This document shows positions 34,641-63,443 of a stretch of DNA of 64,000 bases, one piece after another. How positions within the stretch are numbered: the first letter of the stretch is position 1; each line of letters starts with the position of its first letter. This DNA comes from Lepidodermella squamata (lineage: Eukaryota > Animalia > Gastrotricha). The notes under the pieces are model-generated. The model did not search any database and had not been told where the DNA came from. It was given only the letters and a program-made list of their open reading frames with translations. The translations under genes were made by a program, and so were the position numbers. The stretch lies in assembly GCA_047495785.1 (NCBI GenBank), contig JBLDXI010000025.1, forward strand, positions 1,550,001 to 1,614,000, read 5' to 3'.

Positions 34641-34779
34641 TCTCTACCCCACATTCCGTTTTATATACAGTAGTGTATGATACTAACTCATGAGTGCATG
34701 CAATGCAATAGTGATGAAGCCCAGTTCATGCGCCGGTTTTCACGCATGAAAAATTGCAAGAACCACAGCGGATGATGTT

Positions 34780-36200: not shown

Positions 36201-36206
36201 GATGAT

Positions 36207-37950: not shown

Positions 37951-38167
37951 CTCGGTAATAGAATATAGCTGTCGTTAGAGAGCATCGGTTCTCATTACCT
38001 CGACTAAAGCATTAGTAAATTTGATTTCGGTTCAATGCCAGGTGAATATCCCTTCACCAGCTGTTAAGAGCAACGAGGAATGGCTCTGCGTGTTCACCTT
38101 GTTCACCTAACCACACCCTCGAAGCATCATCTCTCGCTGGCTACTGTTTTCTTGAAGCCACTGAATT

Positions 38168-41100
38168 ATGTTACGTTTTACGTTTATTTGTAGCTTTGTA
38201 TTAATAGGCATTCAAGACAACACCACAAAGGCATACAGACGGCCATCTGCAACGTGGACTTCTTCGACCAATTCAACTTCTCGGGCTATATTTTCGTCTT
38301 CTCCGATCGATTCGCCCGCTGCGGCGAACAATTGGCCTTCTCCGACCAATTCACCCTCTTTGGTCGATTCGGTTCCTACGGCCAATCGGCCCGCTGTGGC
38401 GAACAATTGGCCTTCTCCGACCAATTCACCCTCTTTGGTCGATTCGGTTCCTACGGCCAATCGGCCCGCTGTGGCGAACAATTGGCCTTCTTCGACCAAT
38501 TCAACTTCTCGGGCTATATTTTCGTCTTCTCCGATCGATTCGCCCGCTGCGGCGAACAATTGGCCTTCTCCGACCAATTCACCCTCTTTGGTCGATTCGG
38601 TTCCTACGGCCAATCGGCCCGCTGTGGCGAACAATTGGCCTTCTCCGACCAATTCACCCTCTTTGGTCGATTCGGTTCCTACGGCCAATCGGCCCGCTGT
38701 GGCGAACAATTGGCCTTCTCCGACCAATTCACCCTCTTTGGTCGATTCGGTTCCTACCGCTGCGGCGAACAATTGGCCTTCTCCGACCAATTCACCCTCT
38801 TTGGTCGATTCGGTTCCTACGGCCAATCGGCCCGCTGTGGCGAACAATTGGCCTTCTCCGACCAATTCACCCTCTTTGGTCGATTCGGTTCCTACGGCCA
38901 ATCGGCCCGCTGTGGCGAACAATTGGCCTTCTCCGACCAATTCACCCTCTTTGGTCGATTCGGTTCCTACGGCCAATCGGCCCGCTGTGGCGAACAATTG
39001 GCCTTCTCCGACCAATTCACCCTCTTTGGTCGATTCGGTTCCTACGGCCAATCGGCCCGCTGTGGCGAACAATTGGCCTTCTCCGACCAATTCACCCTCT
39101 TTGGTCGATTCGGTTCCTACCGCTGCGGCGAACAATTGGCCTTCTCCGACCAATTCACCCTCTTTGGTCGATTCGGTTCCTACCGCTGCGGCGAACAATT
39201 GGCCTTCTCCGACCAATTCACCCTCTTTGGTCGATTCGGTTCCTACCGCTGCGGCGAACAATTGGCCTTCTCCGACCAATTCACCCTCTTTGGTCGATTC
39301 GGTTCCTACGGCCAATCGGCCCGCTGTGGCAAACAATTGGCCTTCTCCGACCAATTCACCCTCTTTGGTCGATTCGGCTCCTACGGCCAATCGGCCCGCT
39401 GTGGCGAACAATTGGCCTTCTCCGACCAATTCACCCTCTTTGGTCGATTCGGTTCCTACGGCCAATCGGCCCGCTGTGGCGAACAATTGGCCTTCTCCGA
39501 CCAATTCACCCTCTTTGGTCGATTCGGTTCCTACCGCTGCGGCGAACAATTGGCCTTCTCCGACCAATTCACCCTCTTTGGTCGATTCGGTTCCTACGGC
39601 CAATCGGCCCGCTGTGGCGAACAATTGGCCTTCTCCGACCAATTCACCCTCTTTGGTCGATTCGGTTCCTACGGCCAATCGGCCCGCTGTGGCGAACAAT
39701 TGGCCTTCTCCGACCAATTCACCCTCTTTGGTCGATTCGGTTCCTACGGCCAATCGGCCCGCTGTGGCGAACAATTGGCCTTCTCCGACCAATTCACCCT
39801 CTTTGGTCGATTCGGTTCCTACGGCCAATCGGCCCGCTGTGGCGAACAATTGGCCTTCTCCGACCAATTCACCCTCTTTGGTCGATTCGGTTCCTACCGC
39901 TGCGGCGAACAATTGGCCTTCTCCGACCAATTCACCCTCTTTGGTCGATTCGGTTCCTACCGCTGCGGCGAACAATTGGCCTTCTCCGACCAATTCACCC
40001 TCTTTGGTCGATTCGGTTCCTACCGCTGCGGCGAACAATTGGCCTTCTCCGACCAATTCACCCTCTTTGGTCGATTCGGTTCCTACGGCCAATCGGCCCG
40101 CTGTGGCAAACAATTGGCCTTCTCCGACCAATTCACCCTCTTTGGTCGATTCGGCTCCTACGGCCAATCGGCCCGCTGTGGCGAACAATTGGCCTTCTCC
40201 GACCAATTCACCCTCTTTGGTCGATTCGGTTCCTACGGCCAATCGGCCCGCTGTGGCGAACAATTGGCCTTCTCCGACCAATTCACCCTCTTTGGTCGAT
40301 TCGGTTCCTACCGCTGCGGCGAACAATTGGCCTTCTCCGACCAATTCACCCTCTTTGGTCGATTCGGTTCCTACGGCCAATCGGCCCGCTGTGGCGAACA
40401 ATTGGCCTTCTCCGACCAATTCACCCTCTTTGGTCGATTCGGTTCCTACGGCCAATCGGCCCGCTGTGGCGAACAATTGGCCTTCTCCGACCAATTCACC
40501 CTCTTTGGTCGATTCGGTTCCTGCGGCCAATCGGCCCGCTGTGGCGAACAATTGGCCTTCTCCGACCAATTCACCCTCTTTGGTCGATTCGGTTCCTACG
40601 GCCAATCGGCCCGCTGTGGCGAACAATTGGCCTTCTCCGACCAATTCACCCTCTTTGGTCGATTCGGTTCCTACCGCTGCGGCGAACAATTGGCCTTCTC
40701 CGACCAATTCACCCTCTTTGGTCGATTCGGTTCCTACCGCTGCGGCGAACAATTGGCCTTCTCCGACCAATTCACCCTCTTTGGTCGATTCGGTTCCTAC
40801 CGCTGCGGCGAACAATTGGCCTTCTCCGACCAATTCACCCTCTTTGGTCGATTCGGTTCCTACGGCCAATCGGCCCGCTGTGGCAAACAATTGGCCTTCT
40901 CCGACCAATTCACCCTCTTTGGTCGATTCGGCTCCTACGGCCAATCGGCCCGCTGTGGCGAACAATTGGCCTTCTCCGACCAATTCACCCTCTTTGGTCG
41001 ATTCGGTTCCTACGGCCAATCGGCCCGCTGTGGCGAACAATTGGCCTTCTCCGACCAATTCACCCTCTTTGGTCGATTCGGTTCCTACCGCTGCGGCGAA

Positions 41101-44100
41101 CAATTGGCCTTCTCCGACCAATTCACCCTCTTTGGTCGATTCGGTTCCTACGGCCAATCGGCCCGCTGTGGCGAACAATTGGCCTTCTCCGACCAATTCA
41201 CCTTCTTTGGTCGATTCGGTTCCTACCGCTGCGGCGAACAATTGGCCTTCTCCGACCAATTCACCCTCTTTGGTCGATTCGGTTCCTACGGCCAATCGGC
41301 CCGCTGCGGCGAACAATTGGCCTTCTCCGACCAATTCACCCTCTTTGGTCGATTCGGTTCCTACCGCTGCGGCGAACAATTGGCCTTCTCCGACCAATTC
41401 ACCCTCTTTGGTCGATTCGGTTCCTACCGCTGCGGCGAACAATTGGCCTTCTCCGACCAATTCACCCTCTTTGGTCGATTCGGTTCCTACCGCTGCGGCG
41501 AACAATTGGCCTTCTCCGACCAATTCACCCTCTTTGGTCGATTCGGTTCCTACCGCTGCGGCGAACAATTGGCCTTCTCCGACCAATTCACCCTCTTTGG
41601 TCGATTCGGTTCCTACGGCCAATCGGCCCGCTGTGGCGAACAATTGGCCTTCTCCGACCAATTCACCCTCTTTGGTCGATTCACCCTCTTTGGTCGATTC
41701 GGTTCCTACGGCCAATCGGCCCGCTGTGGCGAACAATTGGCCTTCTCCGACCAATTCACCTTCTTTGGTCGATTCGGTTCCTACCGCTGCGGCGAACAAT
41801 TGGCCTTCTCCGACCAATTCACCCTCTTTGGTCGATTCGGTTCCTACGGCCAATCGGCCCGCTGCGGCGAACAATTGGCCTTCTCCGACCAATTCACCCT
41901 CTTTGGTCGATTCGGTTCCTACCGCTGCGGCGAACAATTGGCCTTCTCCGACCAATTCACCCTCTTTGGTCGATTCGGTTCCTACCGCTGCGGCGAACAA
42001 TTGGCCTTCTCCGACCAATTCACCCTCTTTGGTCGATTCGGTTCCTACCGCTGCGGCGAACAATTGGCCTTCTCCGACCAATTCACCCTCTTTGGTCGAT
42101 TCGGTTCCTACGGCCAATCGGCCCGCTGTGGCGAACAATTGGCCTTCTCCGACCAATTCACCCTCTTTGGTCGATTCACCCTCTTTGGTCGATTCGGTTC
42201 CTACGGCCAATCGGCCCGCTGTGGCGAACAATTGGCCTTCTCCGACCAATTCACCCTCTTTGGTCGATTCACCCTCTTTGGTCGATTCGGTTCCTACGGC
42301 CAATCGGCCCGCTGTGGCGAACAATTGGCCTTCTCCGACCAATTCACCCTCTTTGGTCGATTCGGTTCCTACCGCTGCGGCGAACAATTGGCCTTCTCCG
42401 ACCAATTCACCCTCTTTGGTCGATTCGGTTCCTACCGCTGCGGCGAACAATTGGCCTTCTCCGACCAATTCACCCTCTTTGGTCGATTCGGTTCCTACCG
42501 CTGCGGCGAACAATTGGCCTTCTCCGACCAATTCACCCTCTTTGGTCGATTCGGTTCCTACGGCCAATCGGCCCGCTGTGGCGAACAATTGGCCTTCTCC
42601 GACCAATTCACCCTCTTTGGTCGATTCGGTTCCTACCGCTGCGGCGAACAATTGGCCTTCTCCGACCAATTCACCCTCTTTGGTCGATTCGGTTCCTACC
42701 GCTGCGGCGAACAATTGGCCTTCTCCGACCAATTCACCCTCTTTGGTCGATTCGGTTCCTACCGCTGCGGCGAACAATTGGCCTTCTCCGACCAATTCAC
42801 CCTCTTTGGTCGATTCGGTTCCTACCGCTGCGGCGAACAATTGGCCTTCTCCGACCAATTCACCCTCTTTGGTCGATTCGGCTCCTACGGCCAATCGGCC
42901 CGCTGTGGCGAACAATTGGCCTTCTCCGACCAATTCACCCTCTTTGGTCGATTCGGTTCCTACGGCCAATCGGCCCGCTGTGGCGAACAATTGGCCTTCT
43001 CCGACCAATTCACCCTCTTTGGTCGATTCGGTTCCTACGGCCAATCGGCCCGCTGTGGCGAACAATTGGCCTTCTCCGACCAATTCACCCTCTTTGGTCG
43101 ATTCGGTTCCTACGGCCAATCGGCCCGCTGTGGCGAACAATTGGCCTTCTCCGACCAATTCACCTTCTTTGGTCGATTCGGTTCCTACCGCTGCGGCGAA
43201 CAATTGGCCTTCTCCGACCAATTCACCCTCTTTGGTCGATTCGGTTCCTACCGCTGCGGCGAACAATTGGCCTTCTCCGACCAATTCACCCTCTTTGGTC
43301 GATTCGGTTCCTACGGCCAATCGGCCCGCTGTGGCGAACAATTGGCCTTCTCCGACCAATTCACCCTCTTTGGTCGATTCGGTTCCTACGGCCAATCGGC
43401 CCGCTGTGGCGAACAATTGGCCTTCTCCGACCAATTCACCCTCTTTGGTCGATTCGGTTCCTACGGCCAATCGGCCCGCTGTGGCGAACAATTGGCCTTC
43501 TCCGACCAATTCACCCTCTTTGGTCGATTCGGTTCCTACGGCCAATCGGCCCGCTGTGGCGAACAATTGGCCTTCTCCGACCAATTCACCCTCTTTGGTC
43601 GATTCGGTTCCTACCGCTGCGGCGAACAATTGGCCTTCTCCGACCAATTCACCCTCTTTGGTCGATTCGGTTCCTACCGCTGCGGCGAACAATTGGCCTT
43701 CTCCGACCAATTCACCCTCTTTGGTCGATTCGGCTCCTACGGCCAATCGGCCCGCTGTGGCGAACAATTGGCCTTCTCCGACCAATTCACCCTCTTTGGT
43801 CGATTCGGTTCCTACGGCCAATCGGCCCGCTGTGGCGAACAATTGGCCTTCTCCGACCAATTCACCCTCTTTGGTCGATTCGGTTCCTACGGCCAATCGG
43901 CCCGCTGTGGCGAACAATTGGCCTTCTCCGACCAATTCACCCTCTTTGGTCGATTCGGTTCCTACGGCCAATCGGCCCGCTGTGGCGAACAATTGGCCTT
44001 CTCCGACCAATTCACCTTCTTTGGTCGATTCGGTTCCTACCGCTGCGGCGAACAATTGGCCTTCTCCGACCAATTCACCCTCTTTGGTCGATTCGGTTCC

Positions 44101-47100
44101 TACCGCTGCGGCGAACAATTGGCCTTCTCCGACCAATTCACCCTCTTTGGTCGATTCGGTTCCTACGGCCAATCGGCCCGCTGTGGCGAACAATTGGCCT
44201 TCTCCGACCAATTCACCCTCTTTGGTCGATTCGGTTCCTACGGCCAATCGGCCCGCTGTGGCGAACAATTGGCCTTCTCCGACCAATTCACCCTCTTTGG
44301 TCGATTCGGTTCCTACGGCCAATCGGCCCGCTGTGGCGAACAATTGGCCTTCTCCGACCAATTCACCCTCTTTGGTCGATTCGGTTCCTACGGCCAATCG
44401 GCCCGCTGTGGCGAACAATTGGCCTTCTCCGACCAATTCACCCTCTTTGGTCGATTCGGTTCCTACCGCTGCGGCGAACAATTGGCCTTCTCCGACCAAT
44501 TCACCCTCTTTGGTCGATTCGGTTCCTACCGCTGCGGCGAACAATTGGCCTTCTCCGACCAATTCACCCTCTTTGGTCGATTCGGTTCCTACCGCTGCGG
44601 CGAACAATTGGCCTTCTCCGACCAATTCACCCTCTTTGGTCGATTCGGTTCCTACCGCTGCGGCGAACAATTGGCCTTCTCCGACCAATTCACCCTCTTT
44701 GGTCGATTCGGTTCCTACCGCTGCGGCGAACAATTGGCCTTCTCCGACCAATTCACCCTCTTTGGTCGATTCGGTTCCTACCGCTGCGGCGAACAATTGG
44801 CCTTCTCCGACCAATTCACCCTCTTTGGTCGATTCGGTTCCTACCGCTGCGGCGAACAATTGGCCTTCTCCGACCAATTCACCCTCTTTGGTCGATTCGG
44901 CTCCTACGGCCAATCGGCCCGCTGTGGCGAACAATTGGCCTTCTCCGACCAATTCACCCTCTTTGGTCGATTCGGTTCCTACGGCCAATCGGCCCGCTGT
45001 GGCGAACAATTGGCCTTCTCCGACCAATTCACCCTCTTTGGTCGATTCGGTTCCTACGGCCAATCGGCCCGCTGTGGCGAACAATTGGCCTTCTCCGACC
45101 AATTCACCCTCTTTGGTCGATTCGGTTCCTACGGCCAATCGGCCCGCTGTGGCGAACAATTGGCCTTCTCCGACCAATTCACCTTCTTTGGTCGATTCGG
45201 TTCCTACCGCTGCGGCGAACAATTGGCCTTCTCCGACCAATTCACCCTCTTTGGTCGATTCGGTTCCTACCGCTGCGGCGAACAATTGGCCTTCTCCGAC
45301 CAATTCACCCTCTTTGGTCGATTCGGTTCCTACGGCCAATCGGCCCGCTGTGGCGAACAATTGGCCTTCTCCGACCAATTCACCCTCTTTGGTCGATTCG
45401 GTTCCTACGGCCAATCGGCCCGCTGTGGCGAACAATTGGCCTTCTCCGACCAATTCACCCTCTTTGGTCGATTCGGTTCCTACGGCCAATCGGCCCGCTG
45501 TGGCGAACAATTGGCCTTCTCCGACCAATTCACCCTCTTTGGTCGATTCGGTTCCTACGGCCAATCGGCCCGCTGTGGCGAACAATTGGCCTTCTCCGAC
45601 CAATTCACCCTCTTTGGTCGATTCGGTTCCTACCGCTGCGGCGAACAATTGGCCTTCTCCGACCAATTCACCCTCTTTGGTCGATTCGGTTCCTACCGCT
45701 GCGGCGAACAATTGGCCTTCTCCGACCAATTCACCCTCTTTGGTCGATTCGGTTCCTACCGCTGCGGCGAACAATTGGCCTTCTCCGACCAATTCACCCT
45801 CTTTGGTCGATTCGGTTCCTACCGCTGCGGCGAACAATTGGCCTTCTCCGACCAATTCACCCTCTTTGGTCGATTCGGCTCCTACGGCCAATCGGCCCGC
45901 TGTGGCGAACAATTGGCCTTCTCCGACCAATTCACCCTCTTTGGTCGATTCGGTTCCTACGGCCAATCGGCCCGCTGTGGCGAACAATTGGCCTTCTCCG
46001 ACCAATTCACCCTCTTTGGTCGATTCGGTTCCTACGGCCAATCGGCCCGCTGTGGCGAACAATTGGCCTTCTCCGACCAATTCACCCTCTTTGGTCGATT
46101 CGGTTCCTACGGCCAATCGGCCCGCTGTGGCGAACAATTGGCCTTCTCCGACCAATTCACCTTCTTTGGTCGATTCGGTTCCTACCGCTGCGGCGAACAA
46201 TTGGCCTTCTCCGACCAATTCACCCTCTTTGGTCGATTCGGTTCCTACCGCTGCGGCGAACAATTGGCCTTCTCCGACCAATTCACCCTCTTTGGTCGAT
46301 TCGGTTCCTACGGCCAATCGGCCCGCTGTGGCGAACAATTGGCCTTCTCCGACCAATTCACCCTCTTTGGTCGATTCGGTTCCTACGGCCAATCGGCCCG
46401 CTGTGGCGAACAATTGGCCTTCTCCGACCAATTCACCCTCTTTGGTCGATTCGGTTCCTACGGCCAATCGGCCCGCTGTGGCGAACAATTGGCCTTCTCC
46501 GACCAATTCACCCTCTTTGGTCGATTCGGTTCCTACGGCCAATCGGCCCGCTGTGGCGAACAATTGGCCTTCTCCGACCAATTCACCCTCTTTGGTCGAT
46601 TCGGTTCCTACCGCTGCGGCGAACAATTGGCCTTCTCCGACCAATTCACCCTCTTTGGTCGATTCGGTTCCTACCGCTGCGGCGAACAATTGGCCTTCTC
46701 CGACCAATTCACCCTCTTTGGTCGATTCGGTTCCTACCGCTGCGGCGAACAATTGGCCTTCTCCGACCAATTCACCCTCTTTGGTCGATTCGGTTCCTAC
46801 GGCCAATCGGCCCGCTGTGGCGAACAATTGGCCTTCTCCGACCAATTCACCCTCTTTGGTCGATTCGGTTCCTACCGCTGCGGCGAACAATTGGCCTTCT
46901 CCGACCAATTCACCCTCTTTGGTCGATTCGGTTCCTACCGCTGCGGCGAACAATTGGCCTTCTCCGACCAATTCACCCTCTTTGGTCGATTCGGTTCCTA
47001 CCGCTGCGGCGAACAATTGGCCTTCTCCGACCAATTCACCCTCTTTGGTCGATTCGGTTCCTACCGCTGCGGCGAACAATTGGCCTTCTCCGACCAATTC

Positions 47101-47641
47101 ACCCTCTTTGGTCGATTCGGTTCCTACCGCTGCGGCGAACAATTGGCCTTCTCCGACCAATTCACCCTCTTTGGTCGATTCGGTTCCTACGGCCAATCGG
47201 CCCGCTGTGGCGAACAATTGGCCTTCTCCGACCAATTCACCCTCTTTGGTCGATTCGGTTCCTACGGCCAATCGGCCCGCTGTGGCGAACAATTGGCCTT
47301 CTCCGACCAATTCACCCTCTTTGGTCGATTCGGTTCCTACCGCTGCGGCGAACAATTGGCCTTCTCCGACCAATTCACCCTCTTTGGTCGATTCGGTTCC
47401 TACGGCCAATCGGCCCGCTGTGGCGAACAATTGGCCTTCTCCGACCAATTCACCTTCTTTGGTCGATTCGGTTCCTACCGCTGCGGCGAACAATTGGCCT
47501 TCTCTGACCAATTCACCCTCTTTGGTCGATTCGGTTCCTACGGCCAATCGGCCCGCTGTGGCGAACAATTGGCCTTCTCCGACCAATTCACCCTCTTTGG
47601 TCGATTCGGTTCCTACGGCCAATCGGCATTCTGATTTGTAA
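38168..47641 (+). CDS. Giant Ser/Thr/Pro/Asn-rich mucin-like repeat ORF, 3157 aa (expanded paralog of 48265-49341)
   Basis: Hydrophobic N-terminus MLRFTFICSFVLIG, then 25-aa and 21-aa units. All length variants are multiples of 3. The C-terminal repeat block of the paralog is missing. May be a non-expressed duplicate. Confidence 0.5.
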   Translation: MLRFTFICSFVLIGIQDNTTKAYRRPSATWTSSTNSTSRAIFSSSPIDSPAAANNWPSPTNSPSLVDSVPTANRPAVANNWPSPTNSPSLVDSVPTANRPAVANNWPSSTNSTSRAIFSSSPIDSPAAANNWPSPTNSPSLVDSVPTANRPAVANNWPSPTNSPSLVDSVPTANRPAVANNWPSPTNSPSLVDSVPTAAANNWPSPTNSPSLVDSVPTANRPAVANNWPSPTNSPSLVDSVPTANRPAVANNWPSPTNSPSLVDSVPTANRPAVANNWPSPTNSPSLVDSVPTANRPAVANNWPSPTNSPSLVDSVPTAAANNWPSPTNSPSLVDSVPTAAANNWPSPTNSPSLVDSVPTAAANNWPSPTNSPSLVDSVPTANRPAVANNWPSPTNSPSLVDSAPTANRPAVANNWPSPTNSPSLVDSVPTANRPAVANNWPSPTNSPSLVDSVPTAAANNWPSPTNSPSLVDSVPTANRPAVANNWPSPTNSPSLVDSVPTANRPAVANNWPSPTNSPSLVDSVPTANRPAVANNWPSPTNSPSLVDSVPTANRPAVANNWPSPTNSPSLVDSVPTAAANNWPSPTNSPSLVDSVPTAAANNWPSPTNSPSLVDSVPTAAANNWPSPTNSPSLVDSVPTANRPAVANNWPSPTNSPSLVDSAPTANRPAVANNWPSPTNSPSLVDSVPTANRPAVANNWPSPTNSPSLVDSVPTAAANNWPSPTNSPSLVDSVPTANRPAVANNWPSPTNSPSLVDSVPTANRPAVANNWPSPTNSPSLVDSVPAANRPAVANNWPSPTNSPSLVDSVPTANRPAVANNWPSPTNSPSLVDSVPTAAANNWPSPTNSPSLVDSVPTAAANNWPSPTNSPSLVDSVPTAAANNWPSPTNSPSLVDSVPTANRPAVANNWPSPTNSPSLVDSAPTANRPAVANNWPSPTNSPSLVDSVPTANRPAVANNWPSPTNSPSLVDSVPTAAANNWPSPTNSPSLVDSVPTANRPAVANNWPSPTNSPSLVDSVPTAAANNWPSPTNSPSLVDSVPTANRPAAANNWPSPTNSPSLVDSVPTAAANNWPSPTNSPSLVDSVPTAAANNWPSPTNSPSLVDSVPTAAANNWPSPTNSPSLVDSVPTAAANNWPSPTNSPSLVDSVPTANRPAVANNWPSPTNSPSLVDSPSLVDSVPTANRPAVANNWPSPTNSPSLVDSVPTAAANNWPSPTNSPSLVDSVPTANRPAAANNWPSPTNSPSLVDSVPTAAANNWPSPTNSPSLVDSVPTAAANNWPSPTNSPSLVDSVPTAAANNWPSPTNSPSLVDSVPTANRPAVANNWPSPTNSPSLVDSPSLVDSVPTANRPAVANNWPSPTNSPSLVDSPSLVDSVPTANRPAVANNWPSPTNSPSLVDSVPTAAANNWPSPTNSPSLVDSVPTAAANNWPSPTNSPSLVDSVPTAAANNWPSPTNSPSLVDSVPTANRPAVANNWPSPTNSPSLVDSVPTAAANNWPSPTNSPSLVDSVPTAAANNWPSPTNSPSLVDSVPTAAANNWPSPTNSPSLVDSVPTAAANNWPSPTNSPSLVDSAPTANRPAVANNWPSPTNSPSLVDSVPTANRPAVANNWPSPTNSPSLVDSVPTANRPAVANNWPSPTNSPSLVDSVPTANRPAVANNWPSPTNSPSLVDSVPTAAANNWPSPTNSPSLVDSVPTAAANNWPSPTNSPSLVDSVPTANRPAVANNWPSPTNSPSLVDSVPTANRPAVANNWPSPTNSPSLVDSVPTANRPAVANNWPSPTNSPSLVDSVPTANRPAVANNWPSPTNSPSLVDSVPTAAANNWPSPTNSPSLVDSVPTAAANNWPSPTNSPSLVDSAPTANRPAVANNWPSPTNSPSLVDSVPTANRPAVANNWPSPTNSPSLVDSVPTANRPAVANNWPSPTNSPSLVDSVPTANRPAVANNWPSPTNSPSLVDSVPTAAANNWPSPTNSPSLVDSVPTAAANNWPSPTNSPSLVDSVPTANRPAVANNWPSPTNSPSLVDSVPTANRPAVANNWPSPTNSPSLVDSVPTANRPAVANNWPSPTNSPSLVDSVPTANRPAVANNWPSPTNSPSLVDSVPTAAANNWPSPTNSPSLVDSVPTAAANNWPSPTNSPSLVDSVPTAAANNWPSPTNSPSLVDSVPTAAANNWPSPTNSPSLVDSVPTAAANNWPSPTNSPSLVDSVPTAAANNWPSPTNSPSLVDSVPTAAANNWPSPTNSPSLVDSAPTANRPAVANNWPSPTNSPSLVDSVPTANRPAVANNWPSPTNSPSLVDSVPTANRPAVANNWPSPTNSPSLVDSVPTANRPAVANNWPSPTNSPSLVDSVPTAAANNWPSPTNSPSLVDSVPTAAANNWPSPTNSPSLVDSVPTANRPAVANNWPSPTNSPSLVDSVPTANRPAVANNWPSPTNSPSLVDSVPTANRPAVANNWPSPTNSPSLVDSVPTANRPAVANNWPSPTNSPSLVDSVPTAAANNWPSPTNSPSLVDSVPTAAANNWPSPTNSPSLVDSVPTAAANNWPSPTNSPSLVDSVPTAAANNWPSPTNSPSLVDSAPTANRPAVANNWPSPTNSPSLVDSVPTANRPAVANNWPSPTNSPSLVDSVPTANRPAVANNWPSPTNSPSLVDSVPTANRPAVANNWPSPTNSPSLVDSVPTAAANNWPSPTNSPSLVDSVPTAAANNWPSPTNSPSLVDSVPTANRPAVANNWPSPTNSPSLVDSVPTANRPAVANNWPSPTNSPSLVDSVPTANRPAVANNWPSPTNSPSLVDSVPTANRPAVANNWPSPTNSPSLVDSVPTAAANNWPSPTNSPSLVDSVPTAAANNWPSPTNSPSLVDSVPTAAANNWPSPTNSPSLVDSVPTANRPAVANNWPSPTNSPSLVDSVPTAAANNWPSPTNSPSLVDSVPTAAANNWPSPTNSPSLVDSVPTAAANNWPSPTNSPSLVDSVPTAAANNWPSPTNSPSLVDSVPTAAANNWPSPTNSPSLVDSVPTANRPAVANNWPSPTNSPSLVDSVPTANRPAVANNWPSPTNSPSLVDSVPTAAANNWPSPTNSPSLVDSVPTANRPAVANNWPSPTNSPSLVDSVPTAAANNWPSLTNSPSLVDSVPTANRPAVANNWPSPTNSPSLVDSVPTANRHSDL
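38318..47626. repeat. 9.3-kb coding-type minisatellite of 75-bp and 63-bp units with higher-order structure
   Basis: Core GAACAATTGGCCTTCTCCGACCAATTCACCCTCTTTGGTCGATTCGGTTCCTAC, with or without a 12-bp segment. About 135 units, estimated from length. Confidence 0.97.
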
Positions 47642-47673
47642 CAGTGATCAGTCGACAATTTGGATCATTAGTA

Positions 47674-48094
47674 CATAGTGTGTAAAATAATGGTGTGTAA
47701 TACTTTACACTAATAAAGGAAAAAGTACGTAGCAAGAACATTTTCTATTATTAGTGTAGTACTTTCTTTATATTAATCGAATTTTATATGTATTGACCCT
47801 AAGATGGTGTTCGGCTTGACAATTTAAATATTGTACAAAAATGTATTTTCAGTTTAAATTTCATTTTTGTGCATATTTCCGAATGTGCAAAAAAATCCTT
47901 GAACAGGGCCTAATGCCACCATTTTTAGTTCCGCCGCTCACACATTGGTTTCATTCCGGACTCATTAGCAACGATAAATGGACCAATCAGCGTGCGCGCC
48001 CAAGTTCAACTTGCCAGCGGTTCCACAATGAATAATGATCTGCTATTGCCTTTTATTATTCCCATTTTATATAGCCATTATTTTACACACTATG
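47674..48094. mobile_element. 421-bp MITE with 20-bp perfect TIRs at the palindrome centre
   Basis: CATAGTGTGTAAAATAATGG (47674-47693) / CCATTATTTTACACACTATG (48075-48094). The flanks are inverted copies rather than a direct TSD, although TA|...|TA also fits. Confidence 0.75.
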
Positions 48095-48264
48095 TACTAA
48101 TGATCCAAATTGTCGACTGATCACTGTTACAAATCAGAATGGTCTAAAACTTTGTTTTATCTCATTTTTTTCACTTTTCATAGCTAGTTAGCCTAATTAG
48201 CACAAGAACTCAAGTGTTTGATGTTAATAAGGCGACCGAAATGTATCTGACTCAATTTATTTTA

Positions 48265-49341
48265 TCAATTTCTAGGTACACCAAAAAGACGCAAAATATT
48301 AGACATAGAGGGCGGAGCGACATAATTAGACGCCAGGTTCCAATTGGGCGGAGCGACATAATTAGACTCAAGGTTCCAATTGGGCGGAGCGACATAATTA
48401 GATGCCAGGTTCCAATTGGGCGGAGCGACATAATTAGACTCAAGGTTCCAATTGGGCGGAGCGACATAATTAGACGAAGGGACCAAGGAAGGATTTGGCC
48501 AATTGTTCGCCACAGCGGGCCGATTGGCCGTAGGAACCGAATCGACCAAAGAGGGTGAATTGGTCGGAGAAGGCCAATTGTTCGCCACAGCGGGCCGATT
48601 GGCCGTAGGAACCGAATCGACCAAAGAGGGTGAATTGGTCGGAGAAGGCCAGTTGTTCGCCACAGCGGGCCGATTGGCCGTAGGAACCGAATCGACCAAA
48701 GAGGGTGAATTGGTCGGAGAAGGCCAATTGTTCGCCACAGCGGGCCGATTGGCCGTAGGAACCGAATTGACCAAAGAGGGTGAATTGGTCGGAGAAGGCC
48801 AATTGTTCGCCACAGCGGGCCGATTGGCCGTAGGAACCGAATCGACCAAAGAGGGTGAATTGGTCGGAGAAGGCCAATTGTTCGCCACAGCGGGCCGATT
48901 GGCCGTAGGAACCGAATCGACCAAAGAGGGTGAATTGGTCGGAGAAGGCCAATTGTTCGCCACAGCGGGCCGATTGGCCGTAGGAACCGAATCGACCAAA
49001 GAGGGTGAATTGGTCGGAGAAGGCCAATTGTTCGCCACAGCGGGCCGATTGGCCGTAGGAACCGAATCGACCAAAGAGGGTGAATTGGTCGGAGAAGGCC
49101 AATTGTTCGCCACAGCGGGCCGATTGGCCGTAGGAACCGAATCGACCAAAGAGGGTGAATTGGTCGGAGAAGGCCAATTGTTCGCCGCAGCGGGCGAATC
49201 GATCGGAGAAGACGAAAATATAGCCCGAGAAGTTGAATTGGTCGAAGAAGTCCACGTTGCAGATGGCCGTCTGTAAGCCTTTGTGGTGTTGTCTTGAATG
49301 CCTATTAATACAAAGCTACAAATAAGCGTAAAACGTAACAT
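48265..49341 (-). CDS. Mucin-like repeat protein, 358 aa (or terminal exon 49301-48265 of the multi-TIR gene)
   Basis: 9 x 25-aa NNWPSPTNSPSLVDSVPTANRPAVA, then 4.5 x 12-aa SNYVAPPNWNL(E/A). AATAAA lies just after the stop (48261-48256). Confidence 0.7.
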   Translation of the reverse strand: MLRFTLICSFVLIGIQDNTTKAYRRPSATWTSSTNSTSRAIFSSSPIDSPAAANNWPSPTNSPSLVDSVPTANRPAVANNWPSPTNSPSLVDSVPTANRPAVANNWPSPTNSPSLVDSVPTANRPAVANNWPSPTNSPSLVDSVPTANRPAVANNWPSPTNSPSLVDSVPTANRPAVANNWPSPTNSPSLVNSVPTANRPAVANNWPSPTNSPSLVDSVPTANRPAVANNWPSPTNSPSLVDSVPTANRPAVANNWPSPTNSPSLVDSVPTANRPAVANNWPNPSLVPSSNYVAPPNWNLESNYVAPPNWNLASNYVAPPNWNLESNYVAPPNWNLASNYVAPPSMSNILRLFGVPRN

Positions 49342-49558
49342 AATTCAGTGGCTTCAAGAAAACAGTAGCCAGCGAGAGATGATGCTTCGAGGGTGTGGTT
49401 AGGTGAACAAGGTGAACACGCAGAGCCATTCCTCGTTGCTCTTAACAGCTGGTGAAGGGATATTCACCTGGCATTGAACCGAAATCAAATTTACTAATGC
49501 TTTAGTCGAGGTAATGAGAACCGATGCTCTCTAACGACAGCTATATTCTATTACCGAG

Positions 49559-49934
49559 GAATGCCGCGAAGCTGTGAACAATCATTGTTACGCTACCAAT
49601 GCTGGGAAATCAAAGTTAGTTAAAAATTAGCGGAGGCCTTGTTCTGGTTATGCTTGAGATGAAATATTAAATGCAATTTGTGATTTTATTTTTATGTTTA
49701 ATGTTTATACTGCTATGCTGTACTTAACGATTCTTGTTGCGATTTTTGTCGTTTAGTTTGACATCAGAACATAATTAATTGAGTGTCTGATCTATAACTT
49801 TGTTTTCCCTACTACACCTTCCTGTCATATAATCTGAACTTGTCCTGCAACTATATGTTGTTTTCCTTAACATTGTCAAGCTGCCCTCTATTGGGCGTAT
49901 GAGCTTTCAAATAATAAATAAATAAATAAATTAT
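49559..49934 (+). mobile_element. L2-like LINE 3' UTR fragment with (AATA)n tail (right-arm copy)
   Basis: Inverted copy of 37575-37950. 49560-49690 matches 35216-35340. Confidence 0.65.
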
Positions 49935-50642
49935 TATTTGGGCCAAAGCCTGAAACGTGCTCTGTCGGGTGGCCGGTCAAAAATAGCACTGGTCCCATTG
50001 TTTTCCACCAACACATCAGCTCGTTTTGACAGTGGGCTGCGTGTGTATTTAAGGGAGATATGCTCAAAATCGTTCCACTTTCAGTAAAAGTTGCACACGG
50101 GCTCGAGCGCGGCGCAGTTAATAACTGGCTACGGGCAGGACCGAAGTCTGACTTTGCCCTAACATTATTATATGCAAACATTTTCCGCTATGTCGGGATG
50201 GCGATTTCTCGGTGTAAGATCTTCTTTTCGGAGTAATTTCAGGCTTCTTGCTATTCTCAGCACAAATTTTATAGCACACAATCAAAAGTTAAAATTTCTG
50301 AAATGTTGGGTTTTTATATTAATTTGAGCGCCCACTTTCAACAGCCGGGGAAACATTTATTAGGCCATGCTATTTTCGGTATACTTTTTCATCAATTTTA
50401 TTCAGAAAAATTGAGTAACAATATTGCATGTAGCGGGATTTTTCTGTATGTTACTGTATGTTGCAGCAACATACAATGGGCGGATGAGTTTTAATACTGA
50501 ATTCTTTTGAAACAATGGATTGCCCTAATAAATCTGGCGCTAGAAGTTTGATGTTTTTTGAGATGTTTGGAAAAAGGAACTACCCTTCCTGGCTACGCCC
50601 CTGACAGGACCAAAGTCTGACTTTGCCCTAACATTATGTTAT

Positions 50643-53601
50643 TCACAAATTTTCCGCTATGACGGGAAATCCGAACTGACAGGAAATTTTCCCGTCATAG
50701 TGGAAAGCTGTTTCTCGGAAATATAAGTCATTACCAATAACACCAAAAAGAACGCCAACAATAACGGCAGCAATGACAATTATTACGACAGGCGTAACTA
50801 TCGCAGCGACGTTGCGCTTCCGCTTTCTCTTCTCTTCGGCTTGATTTTCGGGAGAATTATCAATCTGAATTGCGCTGTCACGCGGTTGTACCATCAACAA
50901 TGTAGGAGTGAGTGCTTCTGCACGCACAACCTTCGCGACATTTTCATATGCTGGAGGGGGTGGCAAGTCTTGAAGGCGGATGGTAGCTTTGGCTTTCTCA
51001 ATAATTTTCGCTAGAAGGGCAGCACAGTCTTCGTCGAATCGACTGCGCTTCTCGTCGAATTCACAGTCAAACTGAGAAATCGACGGCGTGTTGTTTAATC
51101 TTGCAAGTGCCGGAAGGAGATCGCCTGTCGAGCTTCTGTCCAACTTGCAAAGAAGCGACATTTTACGCTGGTCAGTTGTCATCTTCCACTCGGCCTTGCA
51201 ATCGTCATCTTGAATGTATGCCTTGCTGACAAAGACGACAATCACCCTCGACCAGGTAATCGATCTCTCCTGGTCTTCCAGCGAAAACTCATCATCATCA
51301 TCGTCGAAAACGTCACATTCAACATTTACCCCATTAGTCAGTAAATATTGAGTAACATCTGCCACCAGATTGAACTGATACGTGTGGTAGCTTATAAAAA
51401 TGTCATGGAACATTTTATTCCTCTCAGCAGCCGGAAGAAGCGATGTTACAGCCGTGCCTCGTTTACCCTTTGGCCTTTTCAACGGCTTCCGAGTTGGAGC
51501 TTCGCCTTGAATTTCACGAACCTCCGAAATCAACTTTGCATCAGCTTTCCGCGACGGATTCCGCATGGTTTTGCTGAATTTGATTTCAAATGCGTGTTTG
51601 TCGATGAAATCAAGATGGATGTATTTAGTGACGTCGAATCGCTCGAGGCAGCACTTGATAAACGGCTTTTTGAGAACTCCGGTGACTTTTATTTCATCCA
51701 TGCATCGAGCGCTGCGCGCTAAATCTTCAGTTAGACATACCAGGACAATTTCGGATTGCCTAATTTTCTTCAAAGATTTGGGCATTAAATTTTGCTTTCC
51801 AGCGAAGCTGACAAGTTATACCTCTCTGATTTCCAAGAATTTATTTCCACCAATCGTCTCTTCTTGCTCGAAATCGCAAAAGACTTTCTTTTTCTGGCTC
51901 TTCAAAAAGCTGTAGATATGCTTAGCAGCGTTAATCTGATATCGGCTGTAAGATATATAGATGTCATAGATCGGTTTGGGCAGTGGAGCCTCTGAAAATC
52001 CAAATTTTAGAGCTGCAGAACAGTTTCAGGGTTCAATTTTACCTGTTTCGCCCAACAATTGAGCTAGTTTCTCGTGCAGAGGCGCTCTGTGCCAACCCAA
52101 GTAGCAATCGACGTAGAGCTTGTTACTGGACATGAAGTCCAACTCCTTTTCGCTGGAAATGTCAAAGCCCTCCTCGGCTATGCATATCATGAATTCTTTC
52201 TGTCGTTTTTTCGTATACCTTGCCTCGTCCATGCAATTCTGACTTTTCGCGTAAGCGCTGCTCACGCACAGAAGAACGATTGCAGAATTCACTATACCGT
52301 CAGCCATCGATTGGTAGAGCGTTTTCCCCGTGGTGATGTTGTCTTTATCGAACCATACGGTTAGTCCTTTTTCATTTCGCAAAAAATCAACTAATTTCTT
52401 GACGCTCTCCTGCTGCGCCCAGTTGTAACTGATGAAAACGTCGTATTGGTAATGTTTCTCAGCCACGGGCTGCATGTTCTGATCACCGTTTTCTTGAAGT
52501 CTCGCGTTTGGGTTTAGAACTTTCCTGATAGCTTCTACCAGCGTAGTGCCAGCTTGGTCCGCGACGGACTTTTCAATACGAGACGCATCGAAGTCGACAA
52601 TCTCTTTGTATTCCGTAATGTAGAATCCATCAGAGTGGTCACCGGTGTTGAACTCGGACATCATGCATGTTATGAACGGTTTCCCAATGAATCGTACGCG
52701 CAGCAGTTGATCCATGCAATCCTCGTCAGTCAAATACTGCTTGCTGCCGCAGACAATAGCAATTTTGGACCTATTTATGATCTGCAATTCAAAAAGCTGC
52801 AAGCCTTGTCTCGTTTTAAAAGAATTGACTTACGTCGCCGTAGGTTTCGTAACTAACGCGGCTGTCAGCTTCAAAATCTACCCAGTATTTGATGTTTTTC
52901 GACCGGAGCTGGTGACAAATTGTTCTCAAGTCTTTTTCTTGTGCCTTGGAATAGCTGACAAAGACTTCGTAATCCGTGGTGATATCACCCTCGCCGCCAT
53001 TTATTGGCACGATGCTAGTCCGTCGATTACTTTGCTTGGCTACTGTGGTGTTATTCGTATTCATCCGCTCCGAATTTCGCGCACGTGGCAACAGATCAGA
53101 CAGAATAGCCAGCACTTGTTTACCATCATTTCGCGGTTCGATGAAGTTGACTTGATATTCGTGGTCTGGGTTGATTTTCAACGCCAAGTAATGCCCAATG
53201 GCTAAATCGTCCTCGATTTTGCACACGACACAGTACTTATTCCGCATCAATGCGTAGAACGCTTCCTTTTGATGATAAGCACTGGTAGCGTAATCTTTGC
53301 TAACACAAATTATTACGACTGCTGACTGGCGAATAGCCTATAACTTAGCTGTCAATAGTTGAGGAGAACTAATTGAGACGTTTACCTCGCGCGTATCTGC
53401 CGTAAGCGCTGCAGCTGCATCCAGTTCGTCATTACCTTCAAAATAAGTCGACCTCTTCGCTTTTCGAATAATCGCCGATAGATCTTCTGCGTGAAATTTC
53501 TGGGAACTATGAGAGCTGATAAATGTGTCGTAGCGGAAATTAGCAGCTGATTTTCCAACCGAGGAGGCTGGTGCAACAGACGAGCGTCTTCTATTTGACA
53601 T
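50643..53601 (-). CDS. Protein with five tandem TIR (TIR_2-type) domains and one C-terminal TM helix, about 917 aa or longer
   Basis: Exons 53601-53386, 53337-52834, 52781-52043, 51991-51822, 51767-50643 (or -50735), with 48-54 nt GT-AG introns in compatible phases. Five box-1 motifs: YDTFISS, YEVFVSY, YDVFISY, YDIYISY, HDIFISY. Each is followed by an S-x-(hydrophobic)-(V/G/L)(S/T)xx(Y/L) strand and an alphaC motif. Then PPPAY, KRKRKR and TM VAAIVTPVVIIVIAAVIVGVLFGVI. Confidence 0.85.
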
Positions 53602-56130: not shown

Positions 56131-58138
56131 TCAGATTTTATAATATAGGCCATCGACGGTAGCATTGCCTTTATTGAGACTTTTAGCCAGAGGTAAGCAA
56201 GTGAACATGATTGCGGGCGTCATGAAAGTAGCAGCTGCATATAACCACATATTGACGCGTTCCAAGACCTCCGCAACATAGACCCATTTCTCCCGCGGTG
56301 ACAGTTCATCGCCAATTGCTTCCACTGCAGCATTCACCTGATTAGCTTGGGTTGCAAGAGGGCTGTGAGCAAACGCAGAGGGGTAATTGCTTGGTAATTG
56401 AGGGGTACTGCATCGCGTTACGACGGATCGGTCTAGGTTTTTAGAGGTGCCGAGTATGGCTTGGATGAAGTCTTTCAGGCTGCTTCTACGCCGGGAATAC
56501 TGATACTTTTGTGGGCCGCTGGACCTTCTCGGGTTTTGCTGGTACCTTCTCTGGCGGCTAAAGTCGAAAAACAAAACTGTTCCAATAGATCGAGCAAAGC
56601 AGAATAGAGCATAAGGAGGTGCATTCTGTTTAAATCACCAGTTTAAAAATTCCAAAATTGATGCAAAGCGTACCTTGTTCAAATTGGCTTGTCTCAAGAA
56701 ATAGAACACAACGCCCTCTCCAAGCAGAGCAATGACGCCAATATAAGCGATTTGAAGGTCGATGAATAGAGATAGAAGAGGGATTTTATGGGAGGATTTC
56801 GGAATTTCGGACAAAATCAAGTTTTGGAAGAAGGAATAGGCAAGTAGACACGTGAATGACATGTGGACTTTACTGACTTCTTGGATCTGTTGAGCAATTC
56901 TTCAAACATCGAGATGCGAGAAAATGAAGAGATTACCGGTAATACGAAAACTACGAGTTCAACGGCAGCGATGACAATACTTGGCAGGATAATATTCACG
57001 TGATAAAATAGAGTTTTTCGGCGCAAAAGCAGGTAGAAAGTAGCCTAGTGTACATAAATGTTAATCTCATGCAGTTCTTCGGTGAAAGCGCTTACACGGT
57101 CAAACATGAGAGGGCTTGCGGGATCATGATTGAAGCTTCCGACCTCGACATGGCGGTCTATTATAGACCAAAGCTCATTATCGACCCAGAGGCTCCCAAC
57201 AATTTCGAGGGGATCTGAAAATATTTTGAATGTCTGCATCGTCGAGGGATAGTTCCAGCTTGCTATCCGAATTTGGCATATCTGCATTATTCCATCCTAA
57301 ATGCATATAACAAGTGTTCAAAACATAATTCGCAAACCTGGCTATCGAATGGAAACAAGCTCAGATCCATATGACAGTCGCCCAAGATATCTCCAATTTG
57401 GTATATTTCGACAGTTCCCAGACGTTTTAGAGTCGCTCTCTTTGTTCTCATGACTGAGCTGGTCCTTTTTGTATAGTAAAAAGCAGTAAATAACTACTAT
57501 ATTCAAAAGAAATCATAATTTACTCCGTATTTCCAACCCCTGTGAGCCAAATGACATCGGGAATCCACATTTCTTTAGCATCAACAATGAGCTGATCGAT
57601 GCATTGATACGGAAATTTCCGAGCCCATCTCAAATACTCGGTTTTCCAAGTCTGAAAATCATTCAAAAAAGTCTGAAATTAAACTGAGCTTTAGGATACA
57701 TATGTTGTCAAAGCTTTACGAGTGTTAGAAATCCATGAAGCTTTATTGTACTTTCGCGTTCGTTCTGGTATTATATAGCAAAGCATGTAGACAAGTTGCG
57801 ACAAAAGAACTGTATTACTTACAAATTCACGAATGCCGTGAAGCTTCATTCGAAGATGAACATTGACTGGGGATGATGCGTTTCTTGTCGGGCGCATTCC
57901 TCTGTTTTTATAATCTTGAAACACGAAGGCGTGCGTTTCATCTTCTGTCACATCTGTAATTGTACATTTGATCTCATATAGAGGGCTAAGAAATAGTTAT
58001 TTGCATACTTTCCCCAGCACAAAATTGATCTAAATAGGCGTAGTTTCCAATCGGATTTCGAAAGGTTACATTTCTGAACTGGAACGAGTGGATGGGAACG
58101 GTTAAAATCGCAAGGCCAGCGTAGCAGAGGAGATACAT
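56131..58138 (-). CDS. Divergent Cys-loop ligand-gated ion channel subunit (nAChR-like, non-alpha), copy A
   Basis: Signal peptide MYLLCYAGLAILTVPIHS, MRP, MWIPDV, Cys loop CHMDLSLFPFDSQIC, ASWNY, RRKTLFY-M1, M2-M3, M4 WVYVAEVLERVNMWLY. Multiple micro-introns. Confidence 0.88.
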
Positions 58139-58613
58139 GTTACTGTAATATTTTTACGCAGATATTAATGCCCTAAATTTGCGAGATAATATTATAGGTA
58201 ACAAAAATATACATGAGGTTTTCATTGCCCTAATAACGAAGCGCCCAAACTATGATTTGAGCGATTGGTACTATTCAAGCCTGAGTTGAGCGCTATAATG
58301 ACCATAAAACGAGTTACGAATTGCGAATTTATTCTTCCTAGCTACATTCGAATCGCTTGCGGCGCGGCATTTGGACGAAAACTGATGAGTTGCGCAATCA
58401 TAGAACAAAAAAGCTCGGTTTTACGTCAAATTGCCCCTTTATGCCGTGACGCTAGCGGAAAACAAGAAAACAGAGGAATACCTAAAGATGAAGCACTAGC
58501 GGAGAGATTAAACCAACATGAAATTCTAAAAAAGGTAACACACGAGAGACCTTTGCACCACGAAACTTTTGCAACATCAGACGAATATTTCACATCTTAT
58601 CCTTTATCTATGT

Positions 58614-60579
58614 TCAAATTGTTGACGTTCCCATCTTCGTCAGATTTTTTTGGTTCGGCGAGTAGGTGAAGATAACAACAGGTGTTATAATGGTCATTGC
58701 AGCGTACAGTATCATGTTGATCCTCTCAAGAGTTTCCGCCATCAGGACCCACATATCGCGAGGACACAACACTGTTTCGCTTGAAACACTGTTGCGATCT
58801 GCACAGACTCCTACCGGCTTGTCTCCTTGAAATTCGGCAGTTACACTGGAAACCTGCTGCGATGACATCTTTTGATCGAATTGTTGAGAGATATCCAAAG
58901 TATCCGGCCTATTTTCAACTGGACGTTCCAAATTGCCCATCAATCGATGTAAAGCCGCTGCAAAGCTGCCACGTCGAGATGATGCAATCATCTTCTGCAT
59001 CTTCAATTGCTCCATTTCCGCGTTGGCTGACAGTACTTTTTGATGAAATCGTCGTGTGGATGAGTCGCAGTTAAGGAACAGCAGCGTCCCTACGTTTTGG
59101 CAAAAGGCGAAGAGCCATTCAGGAGGAGCATTCTAAAACTGGCAACTTAATTCGATCAAGTTTGAGTTTTTTCGACATCTCACCTTATTTAGATTACTCT
59201 GGCGGAGTAAAAAGAAGACCATACCTTCTCCTAACAAAGCTATGCTTCCAATGTAGCACATTTGCAAGTCTATAAACAGCGATAGTAAGGGAATGCTATC
59301 GGATGACTTCGGAATTTCTTCAAGGATAATGTCCTGATTAAGAAAAAGCTTATTCAGTTCATGGTGGGAAATATGAGAAATATTACTTGAAAAAACGTGT
59401 AGGCAAGAAGACACGTCAGAGACATGTGGACCTTGCTCACTTCGTGAATCTGCGAAAATGCAGACTTAAAGGTGAAGTGGTCAGAAAATCGCAAATAACT
59501 CACCGGCAGTATAAAAACGACAAGTTCGACTAAGGATATAATGATGCTGGGGAATACAATATTAACTTCGTAAAAGCGAGGCTTTCTGGCCAGGAGCAGC
59601 GAGAATACTGCCTGAATTAAAAAAAGATATGATTTGCTGTTTTTGATTGCCATCTTACCCTATGATACGTTTCTTTTGTTTCCGGGTCAATGTAGGACAC
59701 GATTTCGGACTTGTTCTCAATATTTTCCCAAATTTCGTTTTGCTTGAAATAATGAGGCACAAATTCGAAGGAATAGTTCAGTAGAGTTAATTGAAGCCGT
59801 TCAACTTGATGATAGATGCTTCCGAGCATGACTCGGCAAATCTGCAGTGAAAGTATCAAACAAGCCTGGAAATAGATGTGCAAACCTGTCTGTCGTAAGG
59901 AAATAGCGTAAGATCAATTTCGCATCGACCGGAAATTATGCCAGTCGGATACATTTCATGCATTCCAGTCGCCTTGATTGATACTTTCATCGGAGACACT
60001 TCCGCAAGCCGCTCTGACATATCTTCTTGCTCCTCTTTCGAGGAATCTCTAGATGAAATATCAATTATTTTCAATCAATTTGCACGAATTGGCCCACATA
60101 ATTTGATGACCGCCGGTAAGCCATGTTAAGTCCGGCAGCCAAACCTTTCTAGAATCAACCAGGAGCGTGCTGGTGCAGTTGATAGCCGGATTATCTTTCC
60201 AGCTGATAAATGCACTCTTCCACAGCTAAGGATTGGATATTTTAGTTAACCTGTGAGAAGAATTAACTACGAAACTTACAACAACTAGATAGCCGTGAAT
60301 TAAAATTGTCCTTTCGTGCTCATTCTGTAAAGAAATGTGTTATCATGGTGGATTCAATGTTAATATCTATCATACCACTCGTCTAAGACTGAACATTCGA
60401 AGCCGTAGTCCAACTTCAACTGGCATTCTAGAGTTATTTCGTGGCCTCATTAGCTTCCATTCTGATTCATTTTGAAAAACGTAGCTGTAAACATCATCTT
60501 CCGTTACATCACAATCGCCGAGCGATGGGGTGGATGCCATCAAGACGGGGACCAAAACGAGAATAATTTGATGGAGCAT
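58614..60579 (-). CDS. Divergent Cys-loop channel subunit, copy B
   Basis: Signal peptide MLHQIILVLVPVLMAS, WLPDL, Cys loop CEIDLTLFPYDRQIC, ARKPRFY-M1, M4 WVLMAETLERINMILY. Confidence 0.88.
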
Positions 60580-61017
60580 TATTTCGACATGAAATTCTTA
60601 TGGCTACTAAGGCAAATAAAAGATACGCAAACAACAGATCATGCTGATAATTCCTTGCTGAACTGAGCCCAAATGAGAGGTGGCTATTGAATGTCCCAAC
60701 AATAAGAGGTCATTTACGCTCCGATTGATTTTCACAAATTAGTATGTCCTCTTGTATGTTCAAATTTGTGTGTTACGATTGCTGCTGGCGCTGAATATTA
60801 GGCAGAGAATTTTCTATATTTTAAGAAGGTCTCTTGATTTCCGAGTGTACCTCTAAAAGATTCGGTTGATTGAGCTCAAGTCTCTATTCCATTTTTCAAG
60901 GCCTCTGATTAAATCGCACACATTTATTTACACATAGACTGGACAATTATAAACAAATAATGTAAAAAATCATTAAATTCATGTTAGTGCAACGCCTCTA
61001 TCTAGACTGAGGCGATT

Positions 61018-63066: not shown

Positions 63067-63443
63067 TTAAACAGATTTATTCAAGCTAGAGCCTAATCTG
63101 TAATTAAATGAATCCTGAAGTAATATTTGCGGTTTGATAGTGACCAGCCGTCATTTTACCGGTAGCATCTTGACAGCCGGATGAGTGGACTCGTGGGTAC
63201 CATTATGAGAGCCATCAGGTGTTAAGGCTATTTACAGTAGCTATCGAGCGATTTTGCGCTCTCATGGGAATAGCGTGCTTTTTCCGCTCCAGTAATTCCG
63301 ACTGATGACAGCCGAATGACAGATTTTAATTGCACTCAAAATAAAAGGAGAATTTTTGCGAAAAACAGGTCATCATTAAATAATTGCACCGACACGATAC
63401 TATGTTTCGTTATGAAGGATTAAAATTCATTGTGTAGCTAGAT

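Follow-up and report, generated by a model that had tools for sequence, protein, structure and literature searches.

In a 64,000-nt stretch of DNA from the gastrotrich Lepidodermella squamata (contig JBLDXI010000025.1, positions 1,550,001 to 1,614,000; 'the window' in what follows), we describe a minus-strand gene with five TIR domains and a repeat-rich exon that lies downstream of it, together spanning 53601 to 48265. Judged by its sequence, the gene very probably codes a single-pass membrane core with its N-terminus and all five TIRs inside the cell. With a confidence that stops a little short of even, we further propose that this animal, from a lineage reported to lack Toll-like receptors (TLRs), has built a TIR receptor of reversed topology, comprising five TIRs inside, one helix, a repeat ectodomain outside and NAD+ cleavage driven by clustering.

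Gastrotrich transcriptomes have been reported to lack TLRs, and how such animals sense microbes is an open question (PMC8609888). If the proposal is true, such a receptor, with its topology reversed and its TIR oligomer built in, would offer a direct candidate for the microbe sensor of TLR-less animals. Even without the splice that would add the ectodomain, five TIRs on a tail anchor are an unusual build. The significance is tempered by the fact that the layout has no relative to show its conservation.

The five-TIR gene

The window reads as animal DNA, with introns of about 50 nt and a GC content of about 43%; the published L. squamata assembly, built from amplified DNA, is 43% GC (PMC11660948). 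A stop-free frame from ATG 53601 passes through five exons and four introns of 48-54 nt, and its unspliced form, read on past the end of exon 5, has 917 aa. The features are as follows.

53386-53601, minus strand, exon 1: start codon ATG 53601, polar N-terminus without a signal peptide, first half of TIR1
53338-53385, minus strand, intron 1: 48 nt, phase 0
52834-53337, minus strand, exon 2: second half of TIR1 (Glu kept), first half of TIR2; Pfam TIR_2 41 bits
52782-52833, minus strand, intron 2: 52 nt, phase 0
52043-52781, minus strand, exon 3: second half of TIR2 (Gln for Glu), entire TIR3 (Glu kept); Pfam TIR_2 85 bits
51992-52042, minus strand, intron 3: 51 nt, phase 1
51822-51991, minus strand, exon 4: first half of TIR4
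51768-51821, minus strand, intron 4: 54 nt, phase 0; acceptor picked for frame, a weak AAG site
50735-51767, minus strand, exon 5: second half of TIR4 and TIR5 (both with Glu), linker, KRKRKR from 50831, transmembrane (TM) helix from 50813

Introns 1, 2 and 4 occupy one and the same phase-0 position in TIR1, TIR2 and TIR4, which supports both the gene model and an origin by internal duplication. The status of intron 1 is also supported by X1, the single holder of the locus in our run search, because X1 carries a 2-nt insertion inside this intron. X1 is the DNA of another isolate, about 1.5% divergent, and is genomic since its contigs cross every intron unspliced; our allele comparison covers 40 of 77 differences. 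Of the codon changes that X1 carries in the final 360 nt of exon 5, five are synonymous and four are not, a pattern that fits purifying selection.

Exons 2, 3 and 5 match Pfam TIR_2 (PF13676) above its curated cut-off of 28 bits (46 bits for exon 5). A hidden Markov model built from two outside TIRs only finds all five domains, TIR1 weakly (independent E-value 0.0017), and hydropathy gives a single peak, one TM helix at aa ~862-888 with KRKRKR against its N-side. The five TIRs and one helix of the original prediction thus stand. The domains share only 15-31% pairwise identity, so the tandem is old. Neither a hydrophobic N-terminus or signal peptide nor an LRR (leucine-rich repeat) or Ig (immunoglobulin) match was found in the five-TIR protein by Pfam and hydropathy. 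All five TIRs precede the helix, which has 860 aa before it; with no signal peptide and a single helix preceded by KRKRKR, they are predicted to be cytosolic whatever comes after it. The predicted N-in single helix is that of a type II membrane protein. A single-sequence structure model of exon 5 was unusable (predicted local distance difference test score 39.5).

Aligned to Cat1, TIR1, 3, 4 and 5 carry Glu at the NADase position after the third strand and TIR2 carries Gln. The closest solved structures by sequence are the NADase TIRs Cat1, AbTir and plant TIRs.

A candidate splice to the repeat exon

The features downstream of exon 5 are as follows.

49302-50734, minus strand, putative intron 5: 1433 nt, phase 1; predicted, not observed spliced
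50643-50734, minus strand, 30-aa tail if unspliced, otherwise the beginning of intron 5: overlapped by a 19-bp hairpin; X1 nonsense allele at 50678
49526-50029, no strand, high-copy repeat DNA: depth 600-2000 against ~70; LINE (long interspersed nuclear element) 3'-end fragment at ~49557-49710
49302-49341, minus strand, T-rich tract: GC 28%, T 50%; read as a signal peptide by open reading frame (ORF) finders
48265-49301, minus strand, repeat exon: a unique stretch of 105 nt, with 75-nt units (9.3 copies) and 36-nt units (4.8 copies)

A phase-1 donor (G|GTAATG, intron from 50734) stands at the end of the helix, immediately after 50735, and is the top-scoring donor in the TM segment. A phase-1 acceptor (TAATAG|GC, exon from 49301) opens into a Ser/Thr/Pro frame of the repeat exon. 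Both sites are as the original prediction had described them, as is their in-frame product of about 1232 aa: exons 1-5 joined to 49301-48265 give 1232 aa with zero internal stops. An AATAAA at 48261 lies 4 nt past the Ser/Thr/Pro stop (48265).

The join implies that the unspliced tail and the apparent signal peptide of the repeat ORF are intronic. Synonymous codon usage was scored against 291 coding windows, from a training set that includes paralogues. The 13 codons of the 'signal peptide' score -8.7 bits, under all 291 windows, with 17% GC at third codon positions (GC3); three sequences elsewhere in the window that look like signal peptides of other genes lie between -0.6 and +4.4 bits, with GC3 50%. 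The 30-codon tail scores -5.6 bits, which places it in the 1.6th percentile among coding windows and the 28th among non-coding ones, and the first 105 nt of the repeat exon score +3.0 bits. This test carries a caveat, since the final 13 codons of the repeat ORF score low too. GC rises from 28% to 47% at the acceptor. In X1 the tail has a Gln-to-stop change, the donor and acceptor are both unchanged, and the 'signal peptide' carries R3C, L6F and S9N, one of which abolishes a competing AG. Codon usage and the X1 alleles therefore favour an intronic origin for both segments, and the T-rich tract is more likely a 3' splice-site tract than a signal peptide.

Several results weigh against the splice. 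Among the 61 GT sites of exon 5 and the tail, donor 50734 ranks 9th; in our splice model, which is rough and noisy, the donor falls at the 20th percentile and the acceptor at the 6th. Splicing to 49467, a stronger acceptor, would leave an 8-residue tail after the helix. Intron 5 would be 1433 nt long against 48-54 nt for the gene's other introns, and polyadenylation signals follow the unspliced stop at 50495, 50402 and 50361. The run search returned no RNA run holding the locus, only the DNA of X1, whose contigs, being of genomic reads, show no joint at any splice site. The intronic reading of the two segments has thus gained from codon usage and alleles and lost from weak splice sites and the competing acceptor. 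The original prediction had also allowed for intermediate exons near 49340-49540; at the score cut-offs used, a search for exons that preserve phase 1 at both ends returned none.

The hairpin that it had placed in the tail, with a partial repeat about 470 bp on, is present: it has 19-nt arms (z = -4.4), and its 3' half recurs 469 nt on. The recurrence belongs to a 63-79-nt duplication (50125-50198 and 50589-50706, 469 nt apart) that contains half of this strong hairpin and has single-copy depth in X1. The first duplication copy is followed by a G-rich motif that we take to resemble a DNA-transposon end. The LINE debris described in the interval is likewise real, as the high-copy DNA at ~49526-50029 has its match in the 3' end of a LINE in another part of the window.

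Weighing both sides, we tentatively regard the TM exon spliced to acceptor 49301 (or 49292, same frame), which gives the joined Ser/Thr/Pro receptor, as the likeliest single transcript, though one somewhat less likely than not. A substantial C-terminal ectodomain is therefore putative, its in-frame join being possible.

The reading frame of the repeat exon

On the minus strand, every frame of the repeat exon is open (344, 349 and 276 codons); two of these frames, and an inverted duplicate treated below, went unremarked in the original prediction. The Ser/Thr/Pro frame ends at 48265 and a second frame, rich in Arg, Leu, Ile and Pro, at 48252. The 75-nt unit, stop-free in four of six frames, divides into a 36-nt and a 39-nt half, both of them relatives of the 36-nt unit. 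All unit lengths (36, 39, 63, 72, 75, 78 and 93) are multiples of three, as are the DNA-only autocorrelation peaks at lags 18, 36, 39 and 57 and the further top lags 9 and 21. This suggests coding in some frame, with the caveat that the array was chosen for being an ORF, which bears on the argument.

In composition (P 18%, N 17%, S 16%, Thr only 7%), the Ser/Thr/Pro reading fits a stalk of mucin type, putatively one with dense O-glycosylation, but its frame is in doubt. We counted substitutions by parsimony over five diverged 24-nt cores of related units. Read in the Arg/Leu/Ile/Pro frame, changes at positions 1, 2 and 3 number 7, 2 and 13 (p = 0.018 against uniform), or 12, 5 and 17 with the tails included (p = 0.04); as a control, a true paralogue pair in the window gives 22/17/61%. 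Read in the Ser/Thr/Pro frame, they number 13, 7 and 2, the third position being least variable, and the ratio of non-synonymous to synonymous change (pN/pS) in the sub-repeats is 2.9, against 0.40 in the Arg/Leu/Ile/Pro frame. Both results speak against the Ser/Thr/Pro frame. Because the counts are small, the units are related and an acid-free, basic, hydrophobic protein is improbable, they lower the mucin reading and do not kill it. The predicted type II mucin receptor thus keeps its N-in five-TIR membrane core, while the divergence of its sub-repeats points to another frame.

The frames also differ in how they can be reached. A phase-1 join from 50734 leads only to the Ser/Thr/Pro frame. 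The Arg/Leu/Ile/Pro frame needs a phase-0 donor, either one of the weak ones in the TM segment or 49363 after a local 22-codon exon, as follows.

49364-49429, minus strand, candidate local first exon: ATG 49429; 62-nt intron to the Arg/Leu/Ile/Pro frame; hypothetical

Two other frames were rejected. The third minus-strand frame has a stop ahead of the 36-nt repeats, its position 2 is the most variable, and its Pfam hits are repeat artefacts. The antisense frame with matching third positions has a stop in every 75-nt unit.

An inverted copy

The DNA from 51305 to 49200 has an inverted duplicate at 36204-38309 with 99.7% identity, part of the following feature.

36204-47693, plus strand, inverted partial copy: half of TIR5, TM, intron 5 and a 133-unit array; without TIR1-4 and the 36-nt repeats

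The two arms, 99.7% alike, form a 15-kb palindrome (36204-51305) around a 381-nt spacer (47694-48074), at the ends of which no terminal inverted repeats were found, only internal hairpins. The copy starts at a GAT microsatellite abutting LINE sequence. Its array (38168-47641, plus strand) has 133 units of 75, 63 and 93 nt and more than 3000 open codons in four frames; the 63- and 93-nt variants are missing from the intact gene. Seven point variants of this array are spread evenly over codon positions, with no visible selection in this copy.

X1 appears to be without the duplication, since its depth is flat and one contig runs across 51305. An amplification artefact is a possible origin of the copy; the allele at 49326, which the copy shares with X1, shows that it did not arise by simple folding back of the intact arm. 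The original prediction had given the receptor an ectodomain of variable length. The 133-unit array sits in a copy that lacks TIR1-4 and the C-terminal repeats and is not seen in X1; as this copy cannot encode the five-TIR receptor, it does not demonstrate such variation.

Alternative gene models

A somewhat unlikely alternative is that the repeat exon is coding in the Arg/Leu/Ile/Pro frame (units like LRPIGPLW), giving a very basic and hydrophobic product with a C-terminal hydrophobic segment. The exon would either belong to a separate 371-aa gene, from ATG 49429 through the 62-nt intron, or be entered from the TM exon by way of the local exon or of a phase-0 donor. Under this model the TIR protein would be tail-anchored, or have cationic repeats outside. 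This frame has the pN/pS of 0.40 and the 7, 2, 13 pattern near that of the paralogue control, preserves Leu through CTT, CTC, CTA, CTG and TTG, and opens directly past the acceptor for 349 codons. Its 62-nt intron, close to the usual length, shows the strongest GC contrast (0.21), and the local exon shares its acid-free composition. That composition also counts against it (L 21%, R 15%, I 15%, almost no D, E, N or A), since Ser/Thr/Pro repeats read out of frame typically look like this and real proteins rarely do. The donors it needs are weak (2.9; 1.6 or less), the AATAAA would fall within its coding sequence, it has no Pfam match and no atlas match above 0.84, and the substitutions behind it number only 22-34, among related units. 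Of the two possible ectodomains, a Ser/Thr/Pro stalk or cationic hydrophobic repeats able to bind anionic microbial surfaces, the latter is less likely.

It is unlikely that the gene ends soon after the helix, its five TIRs tail-anchored with little on the lumenal side (a protein of 917 aa when unspliced, or a tail of 8 residues by way of 49467), and that the array is 3' untranslated region or a non-coding minisatellite. The three polyadenylation signals after the unspliced stop and acceptor 49467, the best in the interval, favour this model. So does the expansion of the array to 9.4 kb in a copy incapable of encoding the receptor; the open frames would stem from the GC-rich unit, stop-free in four of six. 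Such an array leaves its unit lengths and autocorrelation lags, all multiples of three, to be accounted for, and the tail itself looks non-coding and is interrupted by a stop in X1. A pair of genes, as an ORF finder would read the locus, seems very improbable: one for a tail-anchored TIR protein and the other, starting at ATG 49341, for a mucin-like protein that is secreted and has a cleaved signal peptide. In favour of the second gene, its start codon is retained in X1, the peptide has 11 hydrophobic residues and the ORF is intact in the inverted copy (3157 aa). Against these stand the codon usage and GC3 of the 'signal peptide' given above and its X1 changes, of which 3/3 are non-synonymous, remove the sole basic residue and put Asn in the core.

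Comparison with known systems

Homologue searches were made exon by exon. None was found for exon 5, exon 3 or the start of the repeat ORF in length-limited searches and exact look-ups, which tells against the proposed receptor, and two metagenome scans found no homologue. An exhaustive search returned only two distant TIRs; atlas matches were generic TIR_2 clusters below 0.9, or noise. In a limited literature search we found no paper on an animal type II, five-TIR or multi-TIR membrane receptor, and the atypical membrane TIRs described are type I (PMC7075850).

The TLR and IL-1 receptors, which are type I, have in common with the five-TIR protein a single TM helix and a cytosolic TIR (PMC7075850). 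Their ectodomain, of LRR or Ig type, is N-terminal and their one TIR C-terminal, whereas here there are five N-terminal TIR_2 domains and no signal peptide, LRR or Ig. The joined protein is a member of neither the TLR nor the IL-1R family. Hydra HyTRR-1 and HyTRR-2 likewise have a membrane TIR without an LRR sensor. In them one TIR follows the helix on its C-terminal side, whereas the protein described here has five, all placed before the helix.

The best match of exon 5 (E 1e-5) is a bacterial TIR_2-TM-Big_2 protein (P0001, loci L001 and L002) with the same order of TIR, linker, basic patch, TM and extracellular part. It has one TIR and an Ig-like ectodomain, and its 25% identity lies mainly in the TIR; we regard it as an analogue, not an orthologue. 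Since its TIR_2, basic patch, TM and Big_2 stand in this order, the type II TIR layout exists outside animals. An architecture that the original prediction did not recognise is thus without animal precedent in our limited search, and its type II layout has a bacterial counterpart. The gene of P0001 (L001:8001-9362) lies between an unknown gene and an EPSP synthase gene in a gut-type bacterium, with no defence-island context.

With the TIR NADases (Cat1, AbTir, plant TIRs, SARM1) the protein shares Glu at the catalytic position in TIR1, 3, 4 and 5; it differs in having no SAM, ARM, CARF or NB domain, and NAD+ cleavage here is only predicted. Dictyostelium TirC is a membrane-anchored, filament-forming NADase (10.64898/2026.04.30.722052). 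Unlike the five-TIR protein, TirC has an N-terminal helix and one TIR. Type II proteins with Ser/Thr/Pro stalks and membrane mucins have in common with the joined protein an N-in helix followed by a Pro/Ser/Thr-rich repeat; here no folded head domain follows the stalk and there is no SEA domain.

Proposed mechanism

In the receptor that we propose, the TM exon would splice to the T-rich acceptor and so place a low-complexity Ser/Thr/Pro/Asn repeat stalk outside the cell. TIR enzymes must oligomerise, and five in tandem on a membrane would be pre-concentrated. Clustering of the anchors, or compression of the stalk on surface contact, could then let the four Glu-bearing TIRs assemble, and the assembled TIRs would cleave NAD+ or make a nucleotide signal. 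The Gln-bearing TIR2 might serve as a scaffold or brake. As far as the sequence allows, the receptor may work like a clustering-activated TIR NADase. The catalytic Glu is a poor guide here, being present in more than 70% of all TIRs and not predictive of activity (PMC7075850).

Neighbouring genes

Other genes in the window are as follows.

420-14738, minus strand: a large receptor in three tandem paralogues, 74-87% identical in DNA, that by eye looks like a class C GPCR or ANF-receptor relative, with fewer than seven obvious TM helices
19156-29149, plus strand: LDL-receptor-like or EGF and beta-propeller gene
30402-31316, after the preceding gene: ORF with two copies of a glycine-rich-domain-like helical module
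32639-35100, minus strand: SLC23-type nucleobase or ascorbate transporter gene
56131-64000, minus strand: cluster of Cys-loop channel subunit genes

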